The notes under the pieces: model-generated | Databases searched by the model: none | What the model saw: only the letters and a program-made list of their open reading frames with translations | What the model was told of the DNA's origin: nothing | Part shown: in pieces, positions 21,084 through 59,421 of the stretch | How the letters are laid out: each line of letters begins with the position of its first letter | Position numbering within the stretch: the stretch's first letter is position 1 | Translations under genes and position numbers: made by a program | Virus record (IMG/VR): IMGVR_UViG_3300020122_000238 | Span: 1 to 64,000 of that record | Reading direction: 5' to 3' (one strand) | DNA length: 64,000 nucleotides

Positions 21084-23060
21084 ATGGCATCACGCCAAAT
21101 CAAACCTGTCATTGACCTCACAAAGCCTTCGGAGTGGGTTGCTCTTGAGCTTGGGCCCAAGGCGGATGGTGAAGACCCGGATCTCATTAAGCAGTCCATT
21201 CGTCACCACCTCCGAGACGCGGACGTGTTCATTCCAGCGTCCGTCACTCAGGTGGGCGGGGACAGGGTCATTCAGTACCTCCTCGAAGGGTATGCTTTCA
21301 TTCGGCGGGCTCATGCTGAGGAGAAGTACTACCGGCTCGAAGGGAGCAAGTACGTTCAGGGGGTCATCAGCCACGTCGACCGAAGTCGCTTTCGGTCGAC
21401 ACGCCGGATTGCGTACGTCCCGGATCATGAGGTCTCCAGGCTACGACGGCAGATCGAGGCACAGGAGAACCAGGGGATCGAGGTGGGGGACCTCGTGCTC
21501 ATCCTATCGGGGCCTTACCGGCTGATCAAGGCGAAGGTCATCGAGGACATTCCAGAAAAGGACGAGGTCCAAGTTTACATTCAGCTCCGCTCCAAGGAGT
21601 CTCTCATCACCTTCCCCCGAGCTGGGCTCAGGCTTGTCGCGAAGGGGGAGAAGAATTTTCTGACCTACCAGACCCGATGGATGACCCTTCAGCAATGGGG
21701 AGAGGCTGCTTTCCCTGTCATGCAGTGGTCCTCGGATGGTTTTGATGGGATCCTTGATGGGCTGGCGTCCTACACAATGCTCGATGTGTGGACCACCAAA
21801 GAGCGGACTCTTCTCGATCAAGACTTGGTCGCTGGTTACGCGCTCGATTTCGACCCCCTTCGGTTGGAGCTACTCTGGGGGGAGCACGCCAAGCTATCGA
21901 CGTGGATTTCGGCGGGGCAGAAGCAGGTGAACTTCCTTCGAGCGATGTCTTCGACTCCTTCCACGGAGCATTTGCTTCAGCTTGGTGAAGAGGTCCAACG
22001 TCTCTCTAGATGGACTACGGCCGTCAACCAGTTGGTGACGGCCGTCCGAGCCTTCAACATAACCCCCTCTCTCACTCCCATCGAATCGCGGTATCTCGAA
22101 TTGGAGTGGCTCCAGGACATTCAGCTCCGGTTGAAGGCCTTGAGCGACAAGTTGACGGACATAGAAGACGATGTGGAAGACCCTGCAATGACCCAAAATC
22201 TCATCATCGACGGCAACAATCTCGCGGTTCGCTGTGGGCGGGCTCCTGGACTCGATCAGCTCAAGGATAAGCAGGGGCGTCCTTCTGGAGTGGTGACGGG
22301 GTTCCTTCGGAGCCTGGGGGCTCTTCGCAAGAGGTTCCCCAAGGCCACCATCTACGTTTGCTGGGACTACTCCTCGCAGCGTCGTATGAGCACCTTCCCC
22401 GGGTACAAGGCGGGGAGGACTCCCTTCGAGGGACGCGACCAGATCGAGTGGCTGAAGGCAGCCCTACCGTCTTTTGGGGTCGTCCAGGCCTACAACGAGG
22501 TGGAAGAGGCCGACGATGCCATCGCGACTCTCGTCTCGGGTCGCCTCAAGGAGGATGTGAACGTCATCCTCTCGAACGACCGGGATCTTCTCCAGCTCGT
22601 GACTGCAACGACGACTGTCCTCGCTCCTTCGAGTGGTCTCCGCCCCGAGAAGCTCTTCGATGTCGATGCCGTGAAGGAGGAATACGGGGTTCCTCCGGGC
22701 AAGATGGTCTACTTCCGGGCCATGTCGGGAGACAGCTCGGACAAGATTCCTGGTGTTTTCAGGCTCCAGGAGAAGACCATCGTGCATTTGATCCGTACAT
22801 ACGGATCCATTGATGGCGTTTTTTCATCTTCTCTGCCAGAGTTGACGAAATCTCAGCAAGAGAAGATTCGTGCCTCTGAGGCACAGGTCAGGAAGAACGT
22901 GGGGCTCATGGCCCTCGTCTCGAACCTGGACCTTACTTTCGTCCACCCGATGACGAACCCGGAGGCAGCCTCGAAGCACCTCCAAGATGTTGATGTGAAG
23001 GTCGAGCCGATGTTGACGGCGTTCTTCCGTCTGGCGGAGTCCCCTACGAATACAACGTAG
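21084..23060 (+). CDS. NusG-like (NGN+KOW) domain fused to a PolA-type 5'-3' exonuclease
   Basis: VFIP, EGYAFI, VGDLVLILSGPY (KOW); from 22188 IIDGNN, YKAGR, EADD, SNDRDLLQL, GDSSDKIPGV. Confidence 0.85.
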   Translation: MASRQIKPVIDLTKPSEWVALELGPKADGEDPDLIKQSIRHHLRDADVFIPASVTQVGGDRVIQYLLEGYAFIRRAHAEEKYYRLEGSKYVQGVISHVDRSRFRSTRRIAYVPDHEVSRLRRQIEAQENQGIEVGDLVLILSGPYRLIKAKVIEDIPEKDEVQVYIQLRSKESLITFPRAGLRLVAKGEKNFLTYQTRWMTLQQWGEAAFPVMQWSSDGFDGILDGLASYTMLDVWTTKERTLLDQDLVAGYALDFDPLRLELLWGEHAKLSTWISAGQKQVNFLRAMSSTPSTEHLLQLGEEVQRLSRWTTAVNQLVTAVRAFNITPSLTPIESRYLELEWLQDIQLRLKALSDKLTDIEDDVEDPAMTQNLIIDGNNLAVRCGRAPGLDQLKDKQGRPSGVVTGFLRSLGALRKRFPKATIYVCWDYSSQRRMSTFPGYKAGRTPFEGRDQIEWLKAALPSFGVVQAYNEVEEADDAIATLVSGRLKEDVNVILSNDRDLLQLVTATTTVLAPSSGLRPEKLFDVDAVKEEYGVPPGKMVYFRAMSGDSSDKIPGVFRLQEKTIVHLIRTYGSIDGVFSSSLPELTKSQQEKIRASEAQVRKNVGLMALVSNLDLTFVHPMTNPEAASKHLQDVDVKVEPMLTAFFRLAESPTNTT

Positions 23061-23071
23061 GCGGAAGGAAA

Positions 23072-23782
23072 ATGATGTCGACTGGATACGTGATTTCGGT
23101 AGACCCGGCTACTTTGGCCAACCGCTTTCCTTCTGGTCGAGGGAACGAGGAGGAAGACCTCCTCCTCGATCGTCTCCAGATTCTTGAGGACACGGCTGCG
23201 GGCCTCATTCAAGAAGAGGATGACGATGATCCCATTGCAGAGTTCCTCTACTCGGGGGACTACGAAGATCGTCTGGCTCCGCTTCTAGATCGCATCCCCA
23301 AAAGGGAAGCCGATCTCATCTACCTCTACTACATTCAGAAGAAGCGTCAGGCGGATATCGCCGAGATCTTCGACGTCACCCAAGCCGCCATCTCCTATCG
23401 TCTCGATCGGGGTCTTCAGAGGATCAAGTTCCTCCTGTCGATCCCCCAAGTCACTGAGACCGAGCTTCGGCGCGACCTTCCCCTCATTCAAGATGGTCAT
23501 CTCAAGCCTGCGTTCAAGGCCATCGATGTGGACATCTTGGTGGGGATGTGGTCGACGACCTGTCAGAGCGAAGTGGCGATGCGACTCGGCTTGACTCAGG
23601 GTCGAGTCCGGCATCGGTTCTTCAAGGCGGTGAAGCTTCTTGGTGAGGCCTCGGGGAAGGATGGTCGCTTCCTTCGCTATCACAAGGTCTTCGCTGCCAT
23701 TTCGAACAAGAAGTTCAACATCCTCCGTGAGGTGAAGCTCCCCCAGTGGGCGGACCGGGGAGGCGATGCTCTTGACGGGTAG
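23072..23782 (+). CDS. Sigma-70 region-4-like protein with two HTH motifs
   Basis: READLIYLYY...QADIAEIFDVTQAAISYR and QSEVAMRLGLTQGRVRHR. Confidence 0.75.
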   Translation: MMSTGYVISVDPATLANRFPSGRGNEEEDLLLDRLQILEDTAAGLIQEEDDDDPIAEFLYSGDYEDRLAPLLDRIPKREADLIYLYYIQKKRQADIAEIFDVTQAAISYRLDRGLQRIKFLLSIPQVTETELRRDLPLIQDGHLKPAFKAIDVDILVGMWSTTCQSEVAMRLGLTQGRVRHRFFKAVKLLGEASGKDGRFLRYHKVFAAISNKKFNILREVKLPQWADRGGDALDG

Positions 23783-24030
23783 GTAGCCCCTGAGAGGGCG
23801 GAAGGTACGCATCGGAACATCGCCTCCGTGATCCATGCCCTTTCCAAAGCAGACCCTATGCCAGGTCCAGAGACATCGGGGTAGCCTGGCATTTTCGTAT
23901 TTCGCTTCGTCTGAAGGGTGCTCTTGTCGCGGCACCCTGCCCCACTGGGGCATGAAATCTCGAAACACGGCTGTTTTCCAGCCAACATCAGTGTTTTCTT
24001 TTATCGTTTACGCAGAGATGAGGCCGAGCC

Positions 24031-29679: not shown

Positions 29680-32600
29680 ATGGCATCCCCCAAAACCAAA
29701 GCTGAGAATGCTGGGACGAGCCTTGCAGCGCTCGTTCGAACAGCAGGGCAGCAGGCAAAGACAACGGTTGTTGAGAACCTCGAAAAGGAGGCCCTCTCCC
29801 AAATCGAGGTCGTCGATGGGGACCCCCCGGCTCAAGTACGGCCCGCGACGGCTCGTATTTTCAGCATCCTCGACTACATCGAACAGCCTTGGGGGTTGAA
29901 TCTCACCCTCTATCCTGTCCAGAAATTCATCGTCAAGCTCTACTACCACCTACCGTTGGAAAGCAAGGTCAAGACCATTGAGGTCAAGGACATGTTCAAT
30001 ACGGTTCTGTTGCACCATTTCACCGAAGTGGAGTACCTCAAGTTCTTGTACGAAGATGGCCGTTGCAACATCGGCGTACAGGATCATATACGCCGAGAAC
30101 TCCTACTTTCCATAGGTCGTCGTGGGGGAAAATGTGTTACAGGTGACACATTGGTCCTCACCGACCATGGTATCATTCCTATTGAAGAGCTGGGTACAGC
30201 TTCGAAAGAGGACTTCTCTGAATTGAAAGTTGGTGTTGCTCAGGAAGGATCTACCTTGTCTGAGTCCTCCCACTTCTACAATGGTGGGGTGAAGCCGACA
30301 TACCGTCTTCGTACGAAGGCTGGGTATTCGATCTGCGGTACGGGAAATCACCGCGTTCGAGTCATGACTTCCTCAGGCAAAGTCGACTGGCGGTATCTCG
30401 ATGAGCTACGTCAAGGAGACTTCGTCGCGATCCATCGTGGGACGGACTTGTGGGCTTCCGAGAATCTCGACCTTGAGCCTTTCCACAACGGAGATGGTCA
30501 CAAGGATGTCAAGCTTCCTGGTGTTCTGGATGAGAAGCTTGGAAACCTGCTCGGGTATCTAGTCGGGGATGGTACTTGGGGGGACGGGCACGCTATCTCT
30601 CTCACGGTCGAGCACCACGAGACGTGGCGTCATCTTCGATCTCTCATTTCAGAAGTGTTCGGGGCTCCCCGCGTCCAGATGGACAAGCGGACGAAGAATA
30701 CAGGGCGGATCGAGTTCTGTAGCGTCCGAGCCCGAAGGTTCCTTGACGCATTGGGGTGGTCTCTCGATTGTACCCGAGACACCAAGATGATCCCTTGGGC
30801 CATCCTACGGTCTCCCAAGACGGTCGTCTGTGCCTTCCTCAGGGGTCTTTTTGAGACGGACGGCTGCGCTGAGTCTGGTGGGAGGAAGGTTACTTTCTCC
30901 ACCGCCAGCTTCCAGTTGGCTCATGAGGTTCAGGTAGTTCTCTTGAACCTTGGGATTGTGTCTAGTGTTCACCGTAAATGGAACACCAAGACTGAGCGTT
31001 ATTACGCTTATCTGAATTTGCTTGGGGTTCGATCTCGACGTCGGTTCGCAGAACTCGTCGGATTTGATTCGCTTAAAAAGCAACGCCCCCTGCTTGCATC
31101 TCTTCTCGTTGCTGAGGAAGGGAAGTCGGATACAGAGAGCATTCCTCATCAGTACCGAAGGGTGCGAGATCTTCTTGAGTCTATTCCCAAGCGGAACCCG
31201 AGTCGTGGCGAGATGGGCTGGGGTCGATCGAAGCTCCGCCAGGCTATTGGTAATACCTGCAAGCCTGGTTCTGGGGAAGACTTGACGTATCATCGTCTAG
31301 CCAAAGCAATCAAAATCGCAGATGAGCTGGCGGCGAGGCATACCGAGATTGCTCATTTCGAAGAGCTTCTTCGTCTCGATTACTTTTACGATCCAGTGAC
31401 TTCTGTGGAAGAAGGGGAGGATCAGGTCTACGATCTCTCTGTCCCTGTGGGTACATCCTTTGTTGCCAACGGGATGACGAACCACAACACAACATTATCG
31501 GGAATTTTCGCGAGCTATGAGGTCTACCGACTTCTGAATTTGGGGAACCCCCAAGGATACTACGGTCTTCCGAACGGTAACCGTATTCAGATCGTCAGCA
31601 TCGCGACGGACAAGGATCAGGCAGGTCTTCTCTTCAACGAGGTGACCTCACACTTGAGTCGTTGCGAGTACTTCAAGCCCTACATCGCCAACAACACCCT
31701 GAGCCACATTCAGTTCAGGACCCCCCACGACATCGAGAAGTACGGGGCGACAAGCCGGCACGAGAACGGCAAGTTCACCTCGTTCAACGGCAAGGCGACC
31801 ATGAGGGTCACCTTCAAGTCCTGTATCGCGAAGGGGCTTCGTGGCGCGGGTAATGCTGTCGTCATCATGGACGAGATGGCCCACTTCAAGGACACGGGGC
31901 AGTCGAGTGCGAAGGACATCTACGACGCCGTCACTCCTTCTACCGCCGCTTTCTCCCCGAAGGACCCCAACGACACGACGAAGCCAATTGGTGACGTCGA
32001 GGCTCGGGTTATCGCTATTTCGTCGCCTCTCAACAAGCAGGGGAAGTTCTACGAGCTGTATCACCAAGCAATGAGCGGAGGTGAGCCGGCCAAGAATATG
32101 ATCGCGATTCAAGCTCCGACATGGGAAATCAATCCCACGGTTCCTGCCGACTACTACCGGCAGAAGTACCACGCCGATCCTCTGGTCTTCATGACCGAGC
32201 ACGGGGCGCAATTCTCTGATCGTGTCCGTGGTTGGATCGAACGAGAGGTGGATCTCCTGGACTGCATTGATGCAAACCTACGTCCCAAGGAGGCGGGGCG
32301 TCCTCGTGAACCACACCAGATGGGGATCGACATCGGGCTCATGGGGGACGGGACGTCGATTTTCATCACTCATGTCGAGAACAACGAGATCGTTCTGGAC
32401 TACCATGAGTCGTGGTATGCTGGTGTGGACTGGCGTGAGACGAATTCCCATCTTGGGGGTTCCCCCTCGATGGCCTATGCCCGCGGCCTGAAGGACGTCG
32501 AGCGCCTGGACTTCGAGGAGATCGGGAACTGGATCGAGAACCTGACCAAGAGGTTCTTCATCACCGCCGGGATCTTCGACCGTTGGAACGGTATCCCGCT

Positions 32601-33072
32601 GGAGCAGGCTCTCAACAAGAAGGGGCTCAAGCAGTTCAAGTCGGAACACTTCAAGCGCGACTTGTCGAGCCAGATATACCAGAACACGAAGCTCATGATG
32701 TTCGACCGGAAGCTCCGTCTCTATGACTGGCCCAAGGCCACGGTCGGGAACCGGCACTCTCCTTTCATTCAGGAGTTGCTGGGCCTTCAGGCTGAACAGG
32801 TCTCTCGGAACTTGGTCATCGTCTCGGCTTCTGAGACGGTTGGCCAGCATGACGACATGGCTGACGCCTTCGTTCGAGCCGTGTGGCTGTCTGCTCAGCG
32901 CATGACGAATACCCGGCTCGCTCTTGGTCCTTCGGACAGTCGCGGTCAGACGGGGATGGGCATGTCGCTCGCTCGCTACCAGATGGCTCGAGCCCGCAAC
33001 CACGGTGGGTTCTCACAGCGGGTCGTGCCGAGGGGCAGCGGCATGGGGCTTCGGTCGCGAGGAGGCCGGTAG
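29680..33072 (+). CDS. terL: Terminase large subunit, intein-containing
   Basis: Walker A GRRGGK|TT interrupted by the intein, Walker B VIMDEMAH, ISSP, nuclease GIDIG...HDDMADA. Confidence 0.92.
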   Translation: MASPKTKAENAGTSLAALVRTAGQQAKTTVVENLEKEALSQIEVVDGDPPAQVRPATARIFSILDYIEQPWGLNLTLYPVQKFIVKLYYHLPLESKVKTIEVKDMFNTVLLHHFTEVEYLKFLYEDGRCNIGVQDHIRRELLLSIGRRGGKCVTGDTLVLTDHGIIPIEELGTASKEDFSELKVGVAQEGSTLSESSHFYNGGVKPTYRLRTKAGYSICGTGNHRVRVMTSSGKVDWRYLDELRQGDFVAIHRGTDLWASENLDLEPFHNGDGHKDVKLPGVLDEKLGNLLGYLVGDGTWGDGHAISLTVEHHETWRHLRSLISEVFGAPRVQMDKRTKNTGRIEFCSVRARRFLDALGWSLDCTRDTKMIPWAILRSPKTVVCAFLRGLFETDGCAESGGRKVTFSTASFQLAHEVQVVLLNLGIVSSVHRKWNTKTERYYAYLNLLGVRSRRRFAELVGFDSLKKQRPLLASLLVAEEGKSDTESIPHQYRRVRDLLESIPKRNPSRGEMGWGRSKLRQAIGNTCKPGSGEDLTYHRLAKAIKIADELAARHTEIAHFEELLRLDYFYDPVTSVEEGEDQVYDLSVPVGTSFVANGMTNHNTTLSGIFASYEVYRLLNLGNPQGYYGLPNGNRIQIVSIATDKDQAGLLFNEVTSHLSRCEYFKPYIANNTLSHIQFRTPHDIEKYGATSRHENGKFTSFNGKATMRVTFKSCIAKGLRGAGNAVVIMDEMAHFKDTGQSSAKDIYDAVTPSTAAFSPKDPNDTTKPIGDVEARVIAISSPLNKQGKFYELYHQAMSGGEPAKNMIAIQAPTWEINPTVPADYYRQKYHADPLVFMTEHGAQFSDRVRGWIEREVDLLDCIDANLRPKEAGRPREPHQMGIDIGLMGDGTSIFITHVENNEIVLDYHESWYAGVDWRETNSHLGGSPSMAYARGLKDVERLDFEEIGNWIENLTKRFFITAGIFDRWNGIPLEQALNKKGLKQFKSEHFKRDLSSQIYQNTKLMMFDRKLRLYDWPKATVGNRHSPFIQELLGLQAEQVSRNLVIVSASETVGQHDDMADAFVRAVWLSAQRMTNTRLALGPSDSRGQTGMGMSLARYQMARARNHGGFSQRVVPRGSGMGLRSRGGR
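30133..31488 (+). mobile_element. Intein with LAGLIDADG homing endonuclease (452 aa)
   Basis: Starts CVTGDT, block B TGNH, LLGYLVGDG and FLRGLFETDG, ends VYDLSV...ANGMTNHN followed by Thr+1. Confidence 0.95.
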
Positions 33073-43607: not shown

Positions 43608-44885
43608 ATGCGTACACGCACCACCTGGAACCGAGATCAGATCAAGCAGGGGTCGTCGCGGACGGCAGAGGATCCCCGGTCCATGAATCAGGACCACCTC
43701 AGCCAACAGCCTTCGGCGGACAAGTACACCAACGGAGATCCGTCTTCATGGGCGGAGGACATTCACTCCCCCAATGAGTGGGAGAAGGAGTACTCGGGTG
43801 GGCAGACCAAGCGTGACGAGATCGGCATGCCGGAGAAGCGCCCCGAAACCTACAACCATCCTGAGAAGACGGCTGCGGCCGGGAACGAAGAGTTCTACAT
43901 GAAGAAGGCCGATTTCACCGTCAAGCTCGCAAGGATGATGCTCGGCAACACGGCACCTGAGTCGGCCATCGAGGATCAGGCGGTCAATCTGATGCATGTG
44001 CCGGATACGGCCCTCATCGCGACCTACGCCAGCCTCTCCGAGCGTCTCGCTCAGCAGGGTCAGTCACAGGAAGAGAAGGATCAGGAGCAGACTCAGCAGA
44101 AGCAGGCTGCCCTCCAGCTCCGCGCTCAGAAAGCCTTCCAAGCTGGTGATCTCGCCGGAGCCAAGCTGGCTCTCGATGAGGCCCTCGCCATGCCGGCCCC
44201 CACTGCGACGACTCCTGTCGACACCTCGACGGCCCCCTCGACCAGTGTCGCTGCGCCCGCGGCCATGCAGAGCACCCAGGCCCCCGCGGTGTCTGCGGAC
44301 ATCATGCAGGTTGTCCAGGCGGCTGTCACCGCTGCTCTCAAGCAGGCGGGTGTCCTTCGCGCGAACGATCAGCAGATGCCGCAACAGCAGCAGGTCTCGC
44401 AGCAGCAGATGCCCCAGATGCAGCAGTCGCAGCAGCAGATGCCGCAACAGCAGGTCTCACAGCAGGCTCCTCCGATGCAACAGCAGTCGGATGACGCTCT
44501 CCTCGACGACCTCATGGGCGGGATGGGCGGCGGCGACATGTCCGAGTCGGACATCGAGCTGGACGCCCCTCCGATGGACCTCGGCGATGGTGGGGAGATG
44601 CAGCTCGGTCCGGAGGACGACGTCCTCCGGACCCTCTTCGCAACCCAGGAGTCGCAGGACGCGGAGCAGGCACAGCAGGATCAGCAGGGCGCGCAACAGC
44701 AGAAGCAGGCTGGCATGGGCCGCACGGCTTCGACTCGCACGGTCGGGACTCGTCCCACGGGCGGCGTCTCGCGGGTCGGTGGCGGAGTGGCTGGCTCGGG
44801 CAATCGCTCAGGCAATGACATCGACAAGCTCTCGGCCCTCTGGCCCTCGGCTCCCGATGTTCGCGACGCCTTCAACATGAAGTGA
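43608..44885 (+). CDS. Putative scaffolding protein (Gln-rich)
   Basis: Low-complexity Q/A/D-rich protein between the protease and capsid genes. Confidence 0.6.
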   Translation: MRTRTTWNRDQIKQGSSRTAEDPRSMNQDHLSQQPSADKYTNGDPSSWAEDIHSPNEWEKEYSGGQTKRDEIGMPEKRPETYNHPEKTAAAGNEEFYMKKADFTVKLARMMLGNTAPESAIEDQAVNLMHVPDTALIATYASLSERLAQQGQSQEEKDQEQTQQKQAALQLRAQKAFQAGDLAGAKLALDEALAMPAPTATTPVDTSTAPSTSVAAPAAMQSTQAPAVSADIMQVVQAAVTAALKQAGVLRANDQQMPQQQQVSQQQMPQMQQSQQQMPQQQVSQQAPPMQQQSDDALLDDLMGGMGGGDMSESDIELDAPPMDLGDGGEMQLGPEDDVLRTLFATQESQDAEQAQQDQQGAQQQKQAGMGRTASTRTVGTRPTGGVSRVGGGVAGSGNRSGNDIDKLSALWPSAPDVRDAFNMK

Positions 44886-45651: not shown

Positions 45652-46533
45652 ATGAACAACCAGGTTTCCAACGAGCTGAAGCAGCAAATCATCAGCGAGT
45701 ACATCAAGACGGCCGCCGGCCGTGCAAAGCTCGCTGCGTCGATGATCCAGCCCCTTCGGCTGCGTCGTGACTACACCGCGGTCGGTCGCAAGACCTTCCT
45801 CGTCGAGCAGCTACCGGATGGAGCGTTGCCGATCTATGACAAGGACCCCGACGTCACGGCCTTCGTGGTCGGCGAGGAGGGTCAGAACATCCTCGCGATC
45901 CAGAAGCCGCGTCGGGTCATCTTCCCGCTGTTTGAGATCGCCTCGAACCCCGAGATCCCGCTCACGCAGATCAAGGAGCGTCGCTTCGACCTCATCGAGC
46001 GTTCGCAGGACCTCGCGAAGGCCCAGATCCAGGCCGCCGAAGATGAGCGCGTCTTCACGGTTCTCGACTCGATCGCCGTTTCCGGCTTCGACACCCTCCC
46101 CGGGCAGTCGAACCCTGACGTCGCGGTGGTGGCCCCCATCTCTCCGGCCGTCCTCGCGGACGCGTTCGCCGAGATCGAGCGTCACGACCTTCGGGTTGCC
46201 CGGATCTACATGAACGCGGTCGACTACGCGGACATCCGCAAGTTCGGCCGTGACATCCTGGACATCGAGAGCCAGGCCACCCTCCTCAAGACTGGCCTCC
46301 AGGCCGTCCTCTGGGGTGCGCAGATCATCACGTCGAGGCTCGTCCCCGTCGGGTTCGTCTACATCTGCGCGGAGCCCGAGAACTTCGGTCGCTTCCCGGT
46401 CCGCACGGAGCTGACGGTCCTCTCGGCCGACGATCCCAAGGCCCGCACGATCGGCTTCTCGTGTTTTGAGAACGTCGGCATTGGTGCCTTCAACCCCAAG
46501 GCACTCACTCGGGTGGTTGTGCAGCGTTTCTAG
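45652..46533 (+). CDS. Major capsid protein (HK97 fold)
   Basis: GAGG RBS, strong codon bias, follows protease-scaffold-decoration; IYMN...LWGAQI A-domain pattern, ends ENVGIGAFNPKA; followed by a terminator. Confidence 0.85.
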   Translation: MNNQVSNELKQQIISEYIKTAAGRAKLAASMIQPLRLRRDYTAVGRKTFLVEQLPDGALPIYDKDPDVTAFVVGEEGQNILAIQKPRRVIFPLFEIASNPEIPLTQIKERRFDLIERSQDLAKAQIQAAEDERVFTVLDSIAVSGFDTLPGQSNPDVAVVAPISPAVLADAFAEIERHDLRVARIYMNAVDYADIRKFGRDILDIESQATLLKTGLQAVLWGAQIITSRLVPVGFVYICAEPENFGRFPVRTELTVLSADDPKARTIGFSCFENVGIGAFNPKALTRVVVQRF

Positions 46534-55184: not shown

Positions 55185-55227
55185 TCGATGGTCTCCGGCC
55201 AAACTGTCTTCCAAGGTATTTGTCAAC

Positions 55228-56324: not shown

Positions 56325-57224
56325 ATGGGCACAGCATTCTTCCGAGGACAACAGCTCGGGCGTAGCGATCTCAACATCTTCCTGGTCAACGCCTCGGGCA
56401 CGCCCACCAACGCCGCGGAGATCACGTACGCCCTCCTCGACTTCACGACGGGAGGGGAAGTCGTTGTGGGGCCTCCTCGAAGGAACCCCGCGAACCCTTC
56501 GGTTGGGGAGTACTACGCCAGCATCGTCATCCCCCTCGACGCCAATATCGGTTCTTATCGGATTCGTTGGACGATACGCGAGATAGTGGGGGCTCCCATT
56601 CAGCAGGTCGTCCAGGAGTTCGAGGTGGTGGACAAGACGACCGTGGGGGAGTGGGGCCCAGCGACGTACACCCTCATCGAGAGGGACCTCATGCGCCGGC
56701 TGCGCATGCTCCTTCGCGACAACAACCCGGATCGGAACTACCACTTCAGGCCGCCGTCACGGGAGACCACCGTGAAGCAGTACAACCGGGTCTTCGGGTA
56801 CATCTGGGAGGACGAAGAGCTGCAAGAGTTCATCGAGCGTTCGATGGACATGGTCATCGCCTCGCCTCCGAGGACCCCATTCGCGAACATCGACCAGATG
56901 TGCCGGGCTCGCCCCGAGTGGCGAACGCTGCTCCTCACGGGAGGAATGATCCATGCCCTCCAGGCCGTTCGCATCAACTGGATTGCCGACGAGTTCGATT
57001 ACTCGATTGGCGGGGTATCCCTTAACCTCGACAAGGCCAGCAAGTATGAGGGGGCTCTTCAGTCCTCTACCGAGCAGTTCGACAAGCAGCTCGAAAAGGC
57101 CAAGGCCACGGTCAACTACGTTCGAGGTCTCCAACAACCCAAATTCGGGGTTGGTATTCGGTCGGCCTTCGGCCCCTATACCGGAGCTGGCGTCCTGACC
57201 CCCAGGAAGTTCACGGGATTCTGA
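56325..57224 (+). CDS. Putative head-tail adaptor/neck protein
   Basis: Ig-like N-terminus; LRMLLRD...WEDEEL...FDYSIGGVSL pattern seen in head-completion proteins. Confidence 0.6.
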   Translation: MGTAFFRGQQLGRSDLNIFLVNASGTPTNAAEITYALLDFTTGGEVVVGPPRRNPANPSVGEYYASIVIPLDANIGSYRIRWTIREIVGAPIQQVVQEFEVVDKTTVGEWGPATYTLIERDLMRRLRMLLRDNNPDRNYHFRPPSRETTVKQYNRVFGYIWEDEELQEFIERSMDMVIASPPRTPFANIDQMCRARPEWRTLLLTGGMIHALQAVRINWIADEFDYSIGGVSLNLDKASKYEGALQSSTEQFDKQLEKAKATVNYVRGLQQPKFGVGIRSAFGPYTGAGVLTPRKFTGF

Positions 57225-57240
57225 TCCCAGGAGAAATCAC

Positions 57241-58149
57241 ATGGCATACGATCTAAATCACATCTTCACGTACCACCGTCCCACTGCGGATCAGCTCCCG
57301 AAGTACGAGATGATCCGAGATGCAGCGAAGACTTTCGCCTCGGTCGTTCTCGCGTGTACTCCCGCTGGGGAGGACCAGACGACGGCCATTCGGCACATCA
57401 GGGATGCGGTCATGACCGCCAACGCGGCCATCGCTTTGAAGGGCGTCCTGACCAAGGGTGAGACCTTGCTGAAGGCTCTGTCTAGCAAGGTCTATGCGTC
57501 CATCGAGCGGGATGATGTCCGTGTTGCTCGGCTCTACATCAACAACGAAGAGTACGTGACTCTCCGAACGGAGTGCTTGGCATCGTTCGATAGGACGTCC
57601 AACCGAGCAATCATTGAGGCAGGCATCATGGGGAGTCTGTTGGGCGCTCAGGTATACATCTCCGAAGCTGTTCCTCCGGGCTTCGCTTGTGGATTTGCGG
57701 ACGACGCCGACTTTCCCACCCTTGTGATCACTCCGGAGCTGATCCAGACGAAGCTCGTGAACCTCTGCGACTATGGGGATGCGGTTTCGGTATACCCCCG
57801 GCCGGATGCTGTGGCCCGAAAAGCGGCTGTGATGAAGGCCTACGCGGAGAGGGTCTTCGCTTCCCATGGGGCTGCGGGCAATAAGGTCGAGCACATCTAC
57901 ATGAACGCGTACGAGTATGCGGACATCCGCAAGTTCGGACACGATGTCCTGGAGATCGAAAGCCAAGCTATCATCCTCCGCAAGGGGATCATGGGGGTCT
58001 TCCACGGCGCACAGGTCCACGTCTCGCGGGAGGTTCCTCGCGGACAGGTGGCTGTTTTCGCGACGGGGGACGTGATCCCTGAGAAGGTCTCGGAGATGAA
58101 GTTCTTCACGCTGATGTACCCCGAGGAGCAGGGGTCGGCAGCGGTGTAG
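57241..58149 (+). CDS. Acb2/Tad1-like domain fused to two MCP-derived domains
   Basis: N-terminal FTYHxP...Q...Y..IR...AVMTANAAIA hairpin; two repeats similar to the MCP (20/25 identical in the best block); AGGAG RBS. Confidence 0.8.
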   Translation: MAYDLNHIFTYHRPTADQLPKYEMIRDAAKTFASVVLACTPAGEDQTTAIRHIRDAVMTANAAIALKGVLTKGETLLKALSSKVYASIERDDVRVARLYINNEEYVTLRTECLASFDRTSNRAIIEAGIMGSLLGAQVYISEAVPPGFACGFADDADFPTLVITPELIQTKLVNLCDYGDAVSVYPRPDAVARKAAVMKAYAERVFASHGAAGNKVEHIYMNAYEYADIRKFGHDVLEIESQAIILRKGIMGVFHGAQVHVSREVPRGQVAVFATGDVIPEKVSEMKFFTLMYPEEQGSAAV

Positions 58150-58780: not shown

Positions 58781-59068
58781 ATGGAAATGAGTAACGAAAC
58801 CGAGAAGAAGCTCACCGTGAACGACCCGGTCGATGCTGCCACCCTCAAGCACCTCGAAGAAGTGGACGGGGCTCGCAAGATGCTCGCGGCCCAGCTCCTC
58901 GAACTGGAGGAAGAGAAGATCCGCCTCCTCGTCGCCGCTCGCCCACTTCGAGATGAGCGGGACAAGGTCTTCCAGAAGATCCTCATGGATCGGGGTCTAC
59001 CCCCGGACTTCCCTGTGGATGTTGACGAGACGGGGAAGCTCTTTCCTTTGAAGCCCCTTCCGAAGTAG
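58781..59068 (+). CDS. Hypothetical coiled-coil protein
   Basis: 95 aa, strong codon bias. Confidence 0.7.
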   Translation: MEMSNETEKKLTVNDPVDAATLKHLEEVDGARKMLAAQLLELEEEKIRLLVAARPLRDERDKVFQKILMDRGLPPDFPVDVDETGKLFPLKPLPK

Positions 59069-59076
59069 GAGTAAAC

Positions 59077-59421
59077 ATGGAACGACGAGATTTCATTTCG
59101 AGTGTTTTGGGAATGGGCGCAGGCCTGACCCTGGGGTGTTCTATGCAGCAGTCGTTGCTGACGGCGGCTGCGTGGAGTCCCAGGTCGGACATCGTCCGGG
59201 GGATTCAAGAGCGAAAGTTATATCTTAACGGACGGAAAGGATTCGTTCGGGTCATGCAACATAACCCGATTTACAGGGACACACATGGGGTATGCTGTTG
59301 GAACATCAGGTGGAATGATCCCCCTCATCTTGAATGGCATGAGAGCAGTGAGACCTTTGAGGGCACCATGGGACTCGTGGACGAGCATCTGAGAAACCTG
59401 GGATTCACCTTGATCTCCTAA
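59077..59421 (+). CDS. Hypothetical protein with twin-arginine-like N-terminus
   Basis: MERRDFI followed by a hydrophobic stretch; AGGAG RBS. Confidence 0.6.
   Translation: MERRDFISSVLGMGAGLTLGCSMQQSLLTAAAWSPRSDIVRGIQERKLYLNGRKGFVRVMQHNPIYRDTHGVCCWNIRWNDPPHLEWHESSETFEGTMGLVDEHLRNLGFTLIS

Follow-up and report, generated by a model that had tools for sequence, protein, structure and literature searches.

A 302-residue open reading frame lies on the + strand at 57241-58149 of the window, the whole 64,000-nt stretch of DNA analysed here, which derives from a huge (at least 275 kb) uncultured phage. The encoded protein joins a domain of the Acb2/Tad1 hairpin family to two diverged copies of the axial (A) domain of the phage's own HK97-fold major capsid protein (MCP). 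The features of the locus are as follows.

57229..57233 (+), Shine-Dalgarno AGGAG, 7 nt before the ATG; the upstream 299-aa gene stops at 57224
57241..58149 (+), complete ORF, 302 aa plus stop: hairpin, module 1, linker, module 2, tail
57241..57438 (+), Acb2/Tad1-type helical hairpin domain (aa 1-66): conserved FxYHxP lead-in, then two long antiparallel helices predicted at aa 19-39 and 44-66
57463..57741 (+), module 1 (aa ~75-167), class II MCP A-domain-derived module, which keeps the core residues and the MCP E176-R184 segment but has lost the D194-E206 charged patch
57742..57801 (+), predicted flexible linker between the modules (the low-confidence stretch in the model spans aa 156-187)
57802..58062 (+), module 2 (aa 188-274), class I MCP A-domain-derived module, which keeps the MCP-invariant charged patch D194/R196/K197/G199/D201/E206
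57895..57978 (+), 84-nt block that is 82% identical to the MCP gene at 46204-46287
58063..58146 (+), C-terminal tail (aa 275-302), which aligns with the MCP beta-strand that returns to the P-domain
45652..46533 (+), HK97-fold MCP gene (293 aa), the homolog of the modules
46114..46413 (+), MCP segment (aa 155-254, A-domain core plus the following strand) to which both modules are homologous

A hairpin domain followed by two capsid-derived modules

We first examined the N-terminal domain. Residues 10-65 match Pfam PF24729 (Acb2_Tad1_hairpin) over profile positions 1-57 of 58 (E=3e-11; 43.8 bits against a cut-off of 27), PHROG 1454 and 31113 also match, and the nearest ESM Atlas clusters are 83-88% PF24729, whereas NCBIfam has no matching sponge model. 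In the AlphaFold2 (AF2) model, the hairpin has a pLDDT of 92-98. We found 2173 homologs at E<=1e-3, with F9, Y11, H12, P14, Y22, R26, P41, D45, R54, M58 and N61 nearly invariant (Y11 and R26 across 65 hairpin homologs). Y11 and R26 keep the 15-residue spacing of the ligand-contacting Y11/K26 of PaMx33 and JBD67 Acb2 (residue roles from PMC10312549), as the earlier note had claimed.

Direct similarity to validated Acb2 is not significant. Alignment of the hairpin profile to JBD67 Acb2 with hhalign gave a probability of 0.16%, although this single local alignment, itself not significant, places the domain in register with I8/Y11/K26. The best hit of the hairpin profile against the PDB was Acb2 homolog 43 (Acb2_43; 9ptq), at a marginal E=0.094; it aligns end to end, with Y11-H12 on T4-H5 and R26 on K19, all of which are ligand contacts in that structure. 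Single-sequence phmmer of the whole ORF and of aa 1-70 against the PDB returned no Acb2 or Tad1 hit, only the phage G capsid and noise, and no Tad1 chain (7UAV/7UAW) was matched at E<=10 by sequence or profile. Foldseek of the full-length model likewise did not return Acb2 or Tad1, although a bare hairpin inside a 302-aa query is a poor target. The hairpin ends at about aa 66 and runs straight into module 1, and no alignable counterpart of the C-terminal helix or of the cyclic-trinucleotide site (R67/T74) of PaMx33 Acb2 was found; these residues also vary among true Acb2 homologs (PMC10312549).

We next compared the remainder of the protein with the window's capsid protein, which is a true HK97-fold MCP (NCBIfam NF042927 equivalog, E=5e-43, above cut-off; phrog_2522, E=6e-52). 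BLASTP aligned copy 2 (aa 188-274) with MCP 155-240 at 48% identity (E=3e-19) and copy 1 (aa 79-167) with MCP 166-254 at 34% identity (E=2e-12), while the two copies are 33% identical to each other (tblastn E~2e-9). The ORF also matched phage G gp27 (6wkk) at E=3.4e-5. Only MCP residues ~155-254 are represented, twice; the N-arm, E-loop, spine helix and most of the P-domain are missing, and Pfam and NCBIfam capsid models do not match the ORF. Mixed MAFFT alignments meant to give both modules MCP rows were unstable, so structure prediction was split in two. Module 1 gave a pLDDT of 83-94, module 2 on its own gave a pLDDT of 78 and a pTM of 0.71, and the intervening stretch fell below 50 at 156-160 and 164-187. 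Foldseek hits were almost all HK97 capsid proteins, including the top hits for module 2, each individually weak at E of 0.05 or more.

The observation made in the earlier note, a sponge-type hairpin followed by two MCP-derived copies, is therefore confirmed. Its 20/25-residue peptide match between copy 2 and the MCP is exact, and the DNA similarity that it reported is real (blastn, 84 nt at 82% identity, 57895-57978 versus 46204-46287, E=3e-20). Only 16/27 third-codon positions are identical within this block (59%, against about 43% outside it), so the similarity reflects amino-acid constraint, and recent gene conversion from the MCP gene is not supported. One correction is required, in that the copies are old and diverged and are not fresh duplicates of the phage's present MCP: the A-domain segment of the MCP is 86-97% identical among its more than 1372 homologs, in more than 120 clusters of this huge-phage clade, while the modules are 34-48% identical to it.

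Distribution, module classes and genomic context

We then investigated how widely this architecture occurs. An 83%-identical 302-aa ortholog (P0001) is present on 8 independent contigs of up to 350 kb from several samples, and the two-module form with a hairpin was found only in this phage and in this relative. A small family of proteins of ~170-180 aa carries the hairpin and a single module (P0005, P0011, P0046 and P0274-P0278), including P0005, the syntenic ortholog in a ~490-kb relative, and two-module proteins without a hairpin also exist (P0071, P0094). P0006, a 4000-aa protein with 25 matching stretches, was rejected as a compositional artefact, as it is a Thr/Ser/Val-rich repeat protein that matches the linker region and not the MCP.

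Column counts separated the modules into two classes. Class I modules, comprising copy 2 and the hairpin-less modules (P0071, P0094 and P0120), keep seven MCP-invariant, mostly charged positions (D194/R196/K197/G199/R200/D201/E206) at 5-7 of 7 rows each, while the rest of the domain is about 50% identical. Class II modules, comprising copy 1 and all eight single fused modules, have lost this patch, although copy 1 keeps a different one (E176-R184). Only the window protein and P0001 combine a hairpin, a class II module and a class I module. Tree and AU tests did not decide between tandem duplication and separate capture of copy 2 (p=0.34 for copy 1 plus copy 2 as one clade; p=0.066 for copy 2 plus the MCPs as one clade).

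The gene is under purifying selection, strongest on the hairpin. Against P0001, NG86 dN/dS is 0.33 for the whole gene and 0.04-0.13 for the hairpin, compared with 0.028 for the neighbouring structural gene, and the last 20 residues are identical in both lineages. A divergence hotspot in module 1 (57495-57675) has high dS as well as high dN (omega 0.34; Fisher's test against the rest of the gene, p=0.26), and positive selection is not supported. Although only two closely related lineages carry the two-module form, an assembly chimaera or decaying pseudogene is effectively refuted by the conservation data: the same frame recurs on independent contigs, dN/dS is below 1 in every domain, the ribosome-binding site is strong, and the hairpin and module 1 give confident AF2 folds.

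In the window, in P0001 contigs and in the ~490-kb relative, the gene lies inside a same-strand structural block, after a conserved 299-aa gene and near the Gp80 fibre and a 446-aa putative virion protein. No promoter-like or terminator-like site lies between this gene and the upstream gene on the + strand. This location is not conserved in the family, whose other members occupy non-structural, accessory contexts in related phages, one of them next to HNH and AbiJ/Abi_C genes. A search of sequencing runs matched only DNA runs, at 4% of the query words, and no RNA run.

Proposed roles of the hairpin and the capsid-derived modules

The interpretation offered in the earlier note is partly supported. 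The architecture that it described, including the absence from the modules of the N-arm, E-loop and most of the P-domain, is fully supported; its sponge reading is supported at the level of Pfam family membership and conserved pocket positions; and its proposal of a capsid decoy or capsid tether is plausible but remains an inference. What the data establish is that the N-terminal 66 residues belong to the hairpin family and keep the aromatic (Y11) and basic (R26) positions that contact ligand in solved Acb2 proteins, that the C-terminal 230 residues are two autonomous folds derived from the A-domain of the clade's MCP and joined by a disordered linker, that the modules have kept complementary MCP-invariant charged segments, and that the gene is under purifying selection and belongs to a small family occupying variable accessory positions. 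Hexamer formation, ligand binding, engagement of a sensor or of MCP, and expression timing are all inferred.

On this basis, we tentatively favour, at less than even confidence, a modular counter-defence protein. In this view, the hairpin would oligomerize, probably as a hexamer like Acb2 and Acb2_43, and sequester an unidentified nucleotide immune signal of CBASS or Thoeris type, while the capsid-derived modules, above all module 2, would mimic the conserved capsomer-forming face of the MCP A-domain and engage a partner that normally binds MCP, most likely a host sensor that recognizes the A-domain. This would either compete with real MCP for the sensor or place the sponge next to the enzyme that makes the signal. 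The gene is probably co-transcribed with late structural genes, so the protein would appear when MCP does. In line with this reading, copy 2 keeps an MCP-invariant charged surface patch, relatives of the gene lie in accessory islands, Avs7/8/10 sensors bind the penton/hexon-forming face of the MCP A-domain, Thoeris cyclases are activated by MCP, and validated acb2 of JBD67 lies in the head module beside the major head gene. However, a trigger mimic could activate a sensor rather than block it, and the one capsid-sensing Thoeris system mapped so far, from staphylococci, uses the E-loop and P-loop, which the modules lack. Moreover, the ancestral single modules fused to the hairpin have lost the MCP-like patch, so mimicry cannot be the original reason for the fusion, and the hairpin is also fused to unrelated domains such as KTSC and an exonuclease-like region.

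These last observations bear on a second, doubtful possibility, in which the modules have no remaining capsid-related role and serve as an exapted scaffold that extends or adds ligand pockets, as the non-hairpin parts of Tad1 and Acb2_43 do, or that tunes solubility or oligomer geometry. Class II modules keep only core residues, the hairpin tolerates many unrelated partners at either end, the added strands of Acb2_43 contribute to its pocket, and Tad1-like architectures (extension plus hairpin) are common among the hits. Nevertheless, this does not explain why class I modules keep the seven MCP-invariant positions, nor why a second module was added in this lineage.

The structural location, the complementary patches, as expected if capsomer-type A-domain contacts are preserved, and the identical tail would also fit a sponge that docks onto the phage's own MCP or capsomers and is thereby concentrated on assembling procapsids or carried in the particle. 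We consider this unlikely, as other family members lie in accessory contexts, a fragment without the N-arm, E-loop and P-domain cannot take a lattice position, binding the capsomer-forming face of free MCP would risk poisoning the phage's own assembly, and dN/dS is ten times that of the neighbouring structural gene. Less likely still, the hairpin may be only an oligomerization module in a capsid-assembly or regulatory factor, for example one that holds MCP subunits or reports on capsid assembly. The structural operon is compatible with this, related two-module proteins without a hairpin carry basic N-termini that could be nucleic-acid-binding (as judged by eye only), and P0120 has a degenerate hairpin that has lost Y11 and H12. 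Against it, the putative ligand-contact positions are nearly invariant across the hairpin family and under strong purifying selection here, the family is mobile between accessory loci, and the gene is absent or single-module in close relatives that have the same, almost identical MCP, so it is not a core assembly factor.

A more far-reaching reading, which we regard as speculative and unlikely although not excluded, is that MCP A-domain modules are a previously unrecognized class of trigger-mimic counter-defence domains. They would occupy, without activating, host sensors that read the capsomer-forming face (Avs7/8/10- or Dsr1-type receptors, or MCP-activated Thoeris/CBASS cyclases), and here the mimic would also hold a hexameric sponge at the site where the alarm molecule is made. 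As the two modules have kept complementary patches, three chains on each face of a D3 hexamer could present six A-domains as a pseudo-capsomer.

Known immune-signal sponges (Acb2, Tad1, Tad2, Acb4) are small, single-purpose proteins, and recent work shows separately that capsid proteins, specifically the A-domain, are major triggers of bacterial immunity; this gene physically joins the two themes. Literature searches for sponge-capsid fusions or free A-domain proteins found nothing. If the modules engage a sensor or the capsid, this would be the first case of a phage recycling a piece of its own trigger as a counter-measure, and would give a direct handle on which capsid surface is sensed. Even if they are only a scaffold, two results stand, namely a family of non-capsid proteins built from HK97 A-domain modules, for which there is no Pfam model and no paper in the searches made here, and its split into interface-retaining and core-only classes. 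Both are useful for annotating huge-phage genomes and for finding anti-defence genes.

Comparison with known sponges, capsid proteins and inhibitors

The protein shares the PF24729 hairpin, with its two long antiparallel helices and in-register positions 11 and 26, with the Acb2 family sponges (PaMx33/JBD67 Acb2, T4 Vs.4 and Acb2_43; PDB 8H2J, 9PTQ), and is encoded among structural genes, as JBD67 acb2 is. Known Acb2 proteins are single-domain and about 76-108 aa, whereas this one carries two extra folded domains. Tad1 (Thoeris anti-defence 1) shares the hairpin by Pfam definition and illustrates the principle of a hairpin plus an additional domain that shapes function; in many Tad1-like hits, however, the hairpin is C-terminal with an N-terminal extension, while here it is N-terminal and the added domains are capsid-derived.

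Compared with HK97-fold MCPs (NF042927/PF05065), the modules share the A-domain core and the predicted fold but cannot form a shell, and are fused to a non-capsid domain. Finally, DSAD1, which inhibits DSR2, a sensor of the tail tube protein, provides a precedent for a phage protein that neutralizes a defence protein whose trigger is a virion structural protein (PMC11087589). DSAD1 is not reported there as a homolog of the trigger, whereas the candidate inhibitor described here is derived from the trigger itself and is joined to a putative sponge domain.

Genomic setting of the putative sponge-capsid fusion gene

The window is the first 64 kb of a 275-kb IMG/VR viral contig and carries replication genes, encoding a RecD2-like helicase, a clamp-loader subunit, a 5'-3' exonuclease and an RNR-like protein, together with an intein-bearing protein followed by a long same-strand structural block. 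No tRNAs and no Rfam matches were found in it. The features referred to here are:

58-1914, RNR-like ORF, followed within about 330 bp by an unidentified 675-aa ORF and then by the RecD2-like helicase
29680-33072 (+), unidentified 1130-aa protein containing an intein splicing domain (aa 159-603) with an embedded LAGLIDADG homing endonuclease (aa 382-461)
43608-44885 (+), 425-aa Gln/Ala-rich protein with no family hit, between a 495-aa ORF and the major capsid protein (MCP) gene; its position and composition, judged by eye only, suggest a scaffolding protein
45652-46533, MCP gene
57241-58149 (+), 302-aa ORF encoding the hairpin and the two capsid-derived modules
59077-59421 (+), 114-aa ORF carried by a 355-bp insertion (59064-59419) that is absent from L001, a contig of the phage encoding P0001, the 83%-identical homologue; by eye, its N terminus (RRDF...GAGLTLGC) looks like a twin-arginine or lipoprotein signal, so that it may be a phage lipoprotein present in only one lineage

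The 302-aa ORF is real. It starts 16 nt after the stop of a conserved 299-aa gene and has an AGGAG Shine-Dalgarno sequence 7 nt upstream of the ATG, with no promoter-like or terminator-like site between the two genes. Co-transcription with the structural block is therefore likely, although this is an inference. Relative to the P0001 phage, the window lacks about 1.77 kb between the Gp80 fibre gene and the 299-aa gene (55206-55221 in the window versus 6193-7964 in L001), which removes a 160-aa gene and the N-terminal part of a 674-aa Laminin_G_3 protein that is intact in locus L002, marking this as a variable, fibre-like region.

Hairpin domain and capsid-derived modules

The earlier note proposed that this ORF joins an Acb2/Tad1-like nucleotide sponge to two copies of part of the phage's own capsid protein, and as regards the architecture this observation is solid. 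Residues 10-65 match Pfam PF24729 (Acb2/Tad1 hairpin) end to end at 43.8 bits, against a cut-off of 27. An exhaustive phmmer search of 1.84 billion cluster representatives returned 2173 hits at E<=1e-3, almost all of which are 70-130-aa phage proteins consisting of this hairpin, with or without short extensions. In an alignment of 65 of them, F9 is invariant, while Y11, H12, P14, Y22, R26, P41, D45, R54, M58 and N61 are nearly invariant. AlphaFold2 predicts two long antiparallel helices (residues 19-39 and 44-66) at pLDDT 92-98.

We next searched the PDB with a profile of the hairpin. The best hit was Acb2 homolog 43 (9ptq), aligned over the whole domain but only at E=0.094; in this alignment, Y11-H12 fall on T4-H5 and R26 falls on K19, all three of which contact 3'cADPR in the crystal structure. 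Using hhalign against validated JBD67 Acb2, the match was not significant (probability 0.16%), although its only local alignment does place I8, Y11 and R26 on I8, Y11 and K26, which is the register of the cGAMP-binding Y11/K26 of PaMx33 Acb2. No Tad1 structure was hit by sequence or profile, and NCBIfam contained no matching model. Membership of the hairpin family is therefore established, while membership of a functionally validated sponge subfamily is not, and nucleotide binding and oligomerization by this domain are inferred.

The MCP of the window is a bona fide HK97-fold capsid protein (NF042927, E=5e-43; phrog_2522), and the ORF matches it twice. Residues 188-274 (copy 2) align with MCP 155-240 at 48% identity (E=3e-19), while residues 79-167 (copy 1) align with MCP 166-254 at 34% identity (E=2e-12); the two copies are 33% identical to each other. 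The similarity that the earlier note had seen in the DNA is also real, spanning 84 nt at 82% identity (57895-57978 versus 46204-46287, E=3e-20). Its third-codon identity is only 59%, so it reflects protein constraint and not a recent conversion.

Both modules are predicted to form the same compact alpha/beta unit, comprising a long helix, strand, helix, strand, short helix, beta-hairpin and strand. Module 1 has a pLDDT of 83-94, whereas module 2 has a pLDDT of 60-82 in the full-length model and 78 when modelled alone, and a predicted disordered linker (aa 156-187) separates them. Foldseek against the PDB returned almost exclusively HK97-fold capsid proteins for both models, although each hit is individually weak (E of 0.05 or more). 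A recurrent hit covering the whole target was PF0899 of Pyrococcus furiosus (2pk8), a 94-aa protein of unknown function (TM-score on the target 0.51-0.63, E of about 0.5-0.7), which may be a free-standing A-domain-like fold. The modules correspond to the A-domain core plus the next strand, while the N-arm, E-loop and spine-helix part of the P-domain are absent, as the earlier note had stated.

Origin, classes and mobility of the modules

The MCP of this clade is extraordinarily conserved. Its A-domain segment is 86-97% identical across more than 120 90%-identity clusters (hits P0154-P0273), on contigs of 200-620 kb from many sources, with 1372 hits in all at E<=1e-3. At 34-48% identity, the modules are far more diverged than any MCP in the clade, so they are old or fast-evolving. 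They still score higher against the clade MCP than against the more distant MCP of Tunturiibacter phage Tunturi_5 (167 versus 109 for copy 2, and 128 versus 112 for copy 1). The accurate statement is thus that the modules derive from the MCP of this clade, as the phage's own present MCP cannot be told apart from its near-identical relatives.

Only one other protein has the full architecture. This is P0001, which is 83% identical, also 302 aa long, and found on 8 contigs of up to 350 kb at the same genomic position. A small family of 169-179-aa proteins with a hairpin and one module also exists (P0005, P0011, P0046 and P0274-P0278), of which P0005 is the syntenic ortholog, lying directly after the 299-aa gene in a 489,743-bp contig. 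The second module therefore distinguishes the window lineage. Two-module proteins without a hairpin exist as well, namely P0071 (locus L014, 2045-2800) and P0094 (locus L012, 8001-8873). These proteins of 251-290 aa have a basic N terminus and lie among small unknown ORFs, one of them near a PhdYeFM antitoxin gene, showing that the capsid-derived module also exists independently of the sponge domain. Finally, P0120 is a degenerate hairpin (hhalign probability 83%; Y11 and H12 lost) joined to one module.

A maximum-likelihood tree placed all hairpin-linked modules in one clade (support 86/91), with copy 2 branching first. AU tests rejected neither copy 1 plus copy 2 as one clade (p=0.34) nor, quite, copy 2 plus the MCPs as one clade (p=0.066), and these analyses do not decide between duplication and recapture as the origin of the second copy.

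Column counts on the alignment of modules and MCPs revealed a sharp split into two classes. Class I (7 rows) comprises copy 2 of the window protein and of P0001, both modules of P0071 and of P0094, and P0120. Class II comprises copy 1 of the window protein and of P0001 and the 8 single fused modules.

Table. Retention of MCP residues in the two module classes (MCP position; class I, 7 rows; class II).
D194; 7/7; 0
R196; 7/7; 2/2 in copy 1, 2/8 in single modules
K197; 7/7; 0
G199; 6/7; 0
R200; 5/7; 0
D201; 7/7; 0
E206; 6/7; 0

This patch lies on and just after the second helix, and class I modules are otherwise only about 50% identical to the MCP. Class II modules keep none of D194, K197, G199, R200, D201 or E206, and the single fused modules also carry a 2-residue deletion there, although class II modules do keep the core residues F172, M187, N188, G215, W221-G222-A223, P232 and G234. 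Copy 1 keeps a different MCP-invariant segment (I175, E176, R177, D179, R181, V182 and R184), of which copy 2 has kept only V182. The two modules of this protein have therefore retained complementary pieces of the conserved charged surface of the capsid protein. Retention of charged, probably exposed residues suggests a retained protein-protein interface, although this is inferred from sequence conservation alone.

We then compared the window gene with that of P0001 (57241-58146 versus 10001-10906 in L001).

Table. dN/dS between the window and P0001 lineages.
Hairpin; 0.13 (0.04-0.13 in 30-codon windows)
Module 1; 0.36
Module 2; 0.51, on very few changes
Whole gene; 0.33
Upstream 299-aa structural gene; 0.028

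A divergence hotspot in module 1 (57495-57675, down to 67% nucleotide identity) has both high dS and high dN (omega 0.34). Synonymous divergence varies about ten-fold along the gene, with dS of about 0.1 in module 2, 0.35-0.5 in the hairpin and up to 1.2 in the middle of module 1. This fits a mosaic history and suggests intragenic recombination between lineages rather than positive selection.

Family members occupy different places in related phages, including the structural block (window, P0001 contigs and P0005), a group of small ORFs with NUDIX, methyltransferase and Cpn60 genes (P0277), a site near an AAA ATPase (P0011), and an HNH, AbiJ/Abi_C island between the RNR and DNA ligase genes (P0120). 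In the last case (locus L030, 6023-8543, in a related huge phage), genes for an HNH endonuclease, an AbiJ_NTD4/Abi_C protein and P0120, a degenerate hairpin plus a class I module, are adjacent. As the RNR-like ORF in the window is instead followed by the 675-aa ORF and the helicase gene, this looks like an inserted accessory island. Such varied placement of the family is the behaviour of an accessory, conflict-related gene and not of a core structural one.

Proposed counter-defence role and relation to known sponges

The best-supported reading, which we put forward tentatively, is a bifunctional counter-defence protein, in which a hairpin core would oligomerize and sequester an immune nucleotide, while the capsid-derived modules, especially module 2, would mimic the conserved face of the MCP A-domain. 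Hairpin-family membership, homology of both modules to the MCP and their split into two classes are shown by our analysis, whereas ligand binding, oligomerization, the retained interface, mimicry and co-transcription are inferred. The literature gives this reading a concrete basis, as the Avs7/8/10 sensors bind the penton/hexon-forming face of the MCP A-domain, Thoeris TIR cyclases are activated by direct MCP binding (PMC12578639), and capsid and assembly proteins are linked to CBASS escape. Against this reading, the contacts in the staphylococcal Thoeris system map to the E-loop and P-loop, which the modules lack, a mimic might activate a sensor rather than block it, and the older single fused modules have lost the MCP-like patch. 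It also counts against this reading that the hairpin is fused to unrelated partners, including a KTSC domain (P0104), a region with weak DNA polymerase exonuclease similarity (P0074), a Cys-rich C-terminal region (P0003) and an N-terminal Cys-rich region (P0002). Tethering to the phage's own capsid, a pure scaffold or pocket extension, and a non-defence assembly role are not excluded on present evidence. The interpretation in the earlier note, of a capsid decoy or a capsid-tethered sponge, is thus only partly supported, in that the architecture holds while the function is a hypothesis, albeit one that is directly testable.

Full-text literature searches found no description of a sponge-capsid fusion or of free A-domain module proteins, and Pfam has no model for the module. 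Multi-domain sponge homologues do exist, however, as one large survey removed proteins carrying PF21825 or PDB 6E3C alongside the sponge domain. A location among head genes does not argue against a sponge, because validated acb2 of Pseudomonas phage JBD67 (22985-23311 in NC_042135.1; region examined 21815-23828, L019) lies one small ORF downstream of the major head gene, between it and the head-tail adaptor gene. Sponge genes embedded in head modules therefore have precedent, and adjacency to the MCP gene offers a route to fusion. Compared with these systems, the protein described here is a putative sponge of the hairpin family that differs in carrying a novel, capsid-derived appendage.
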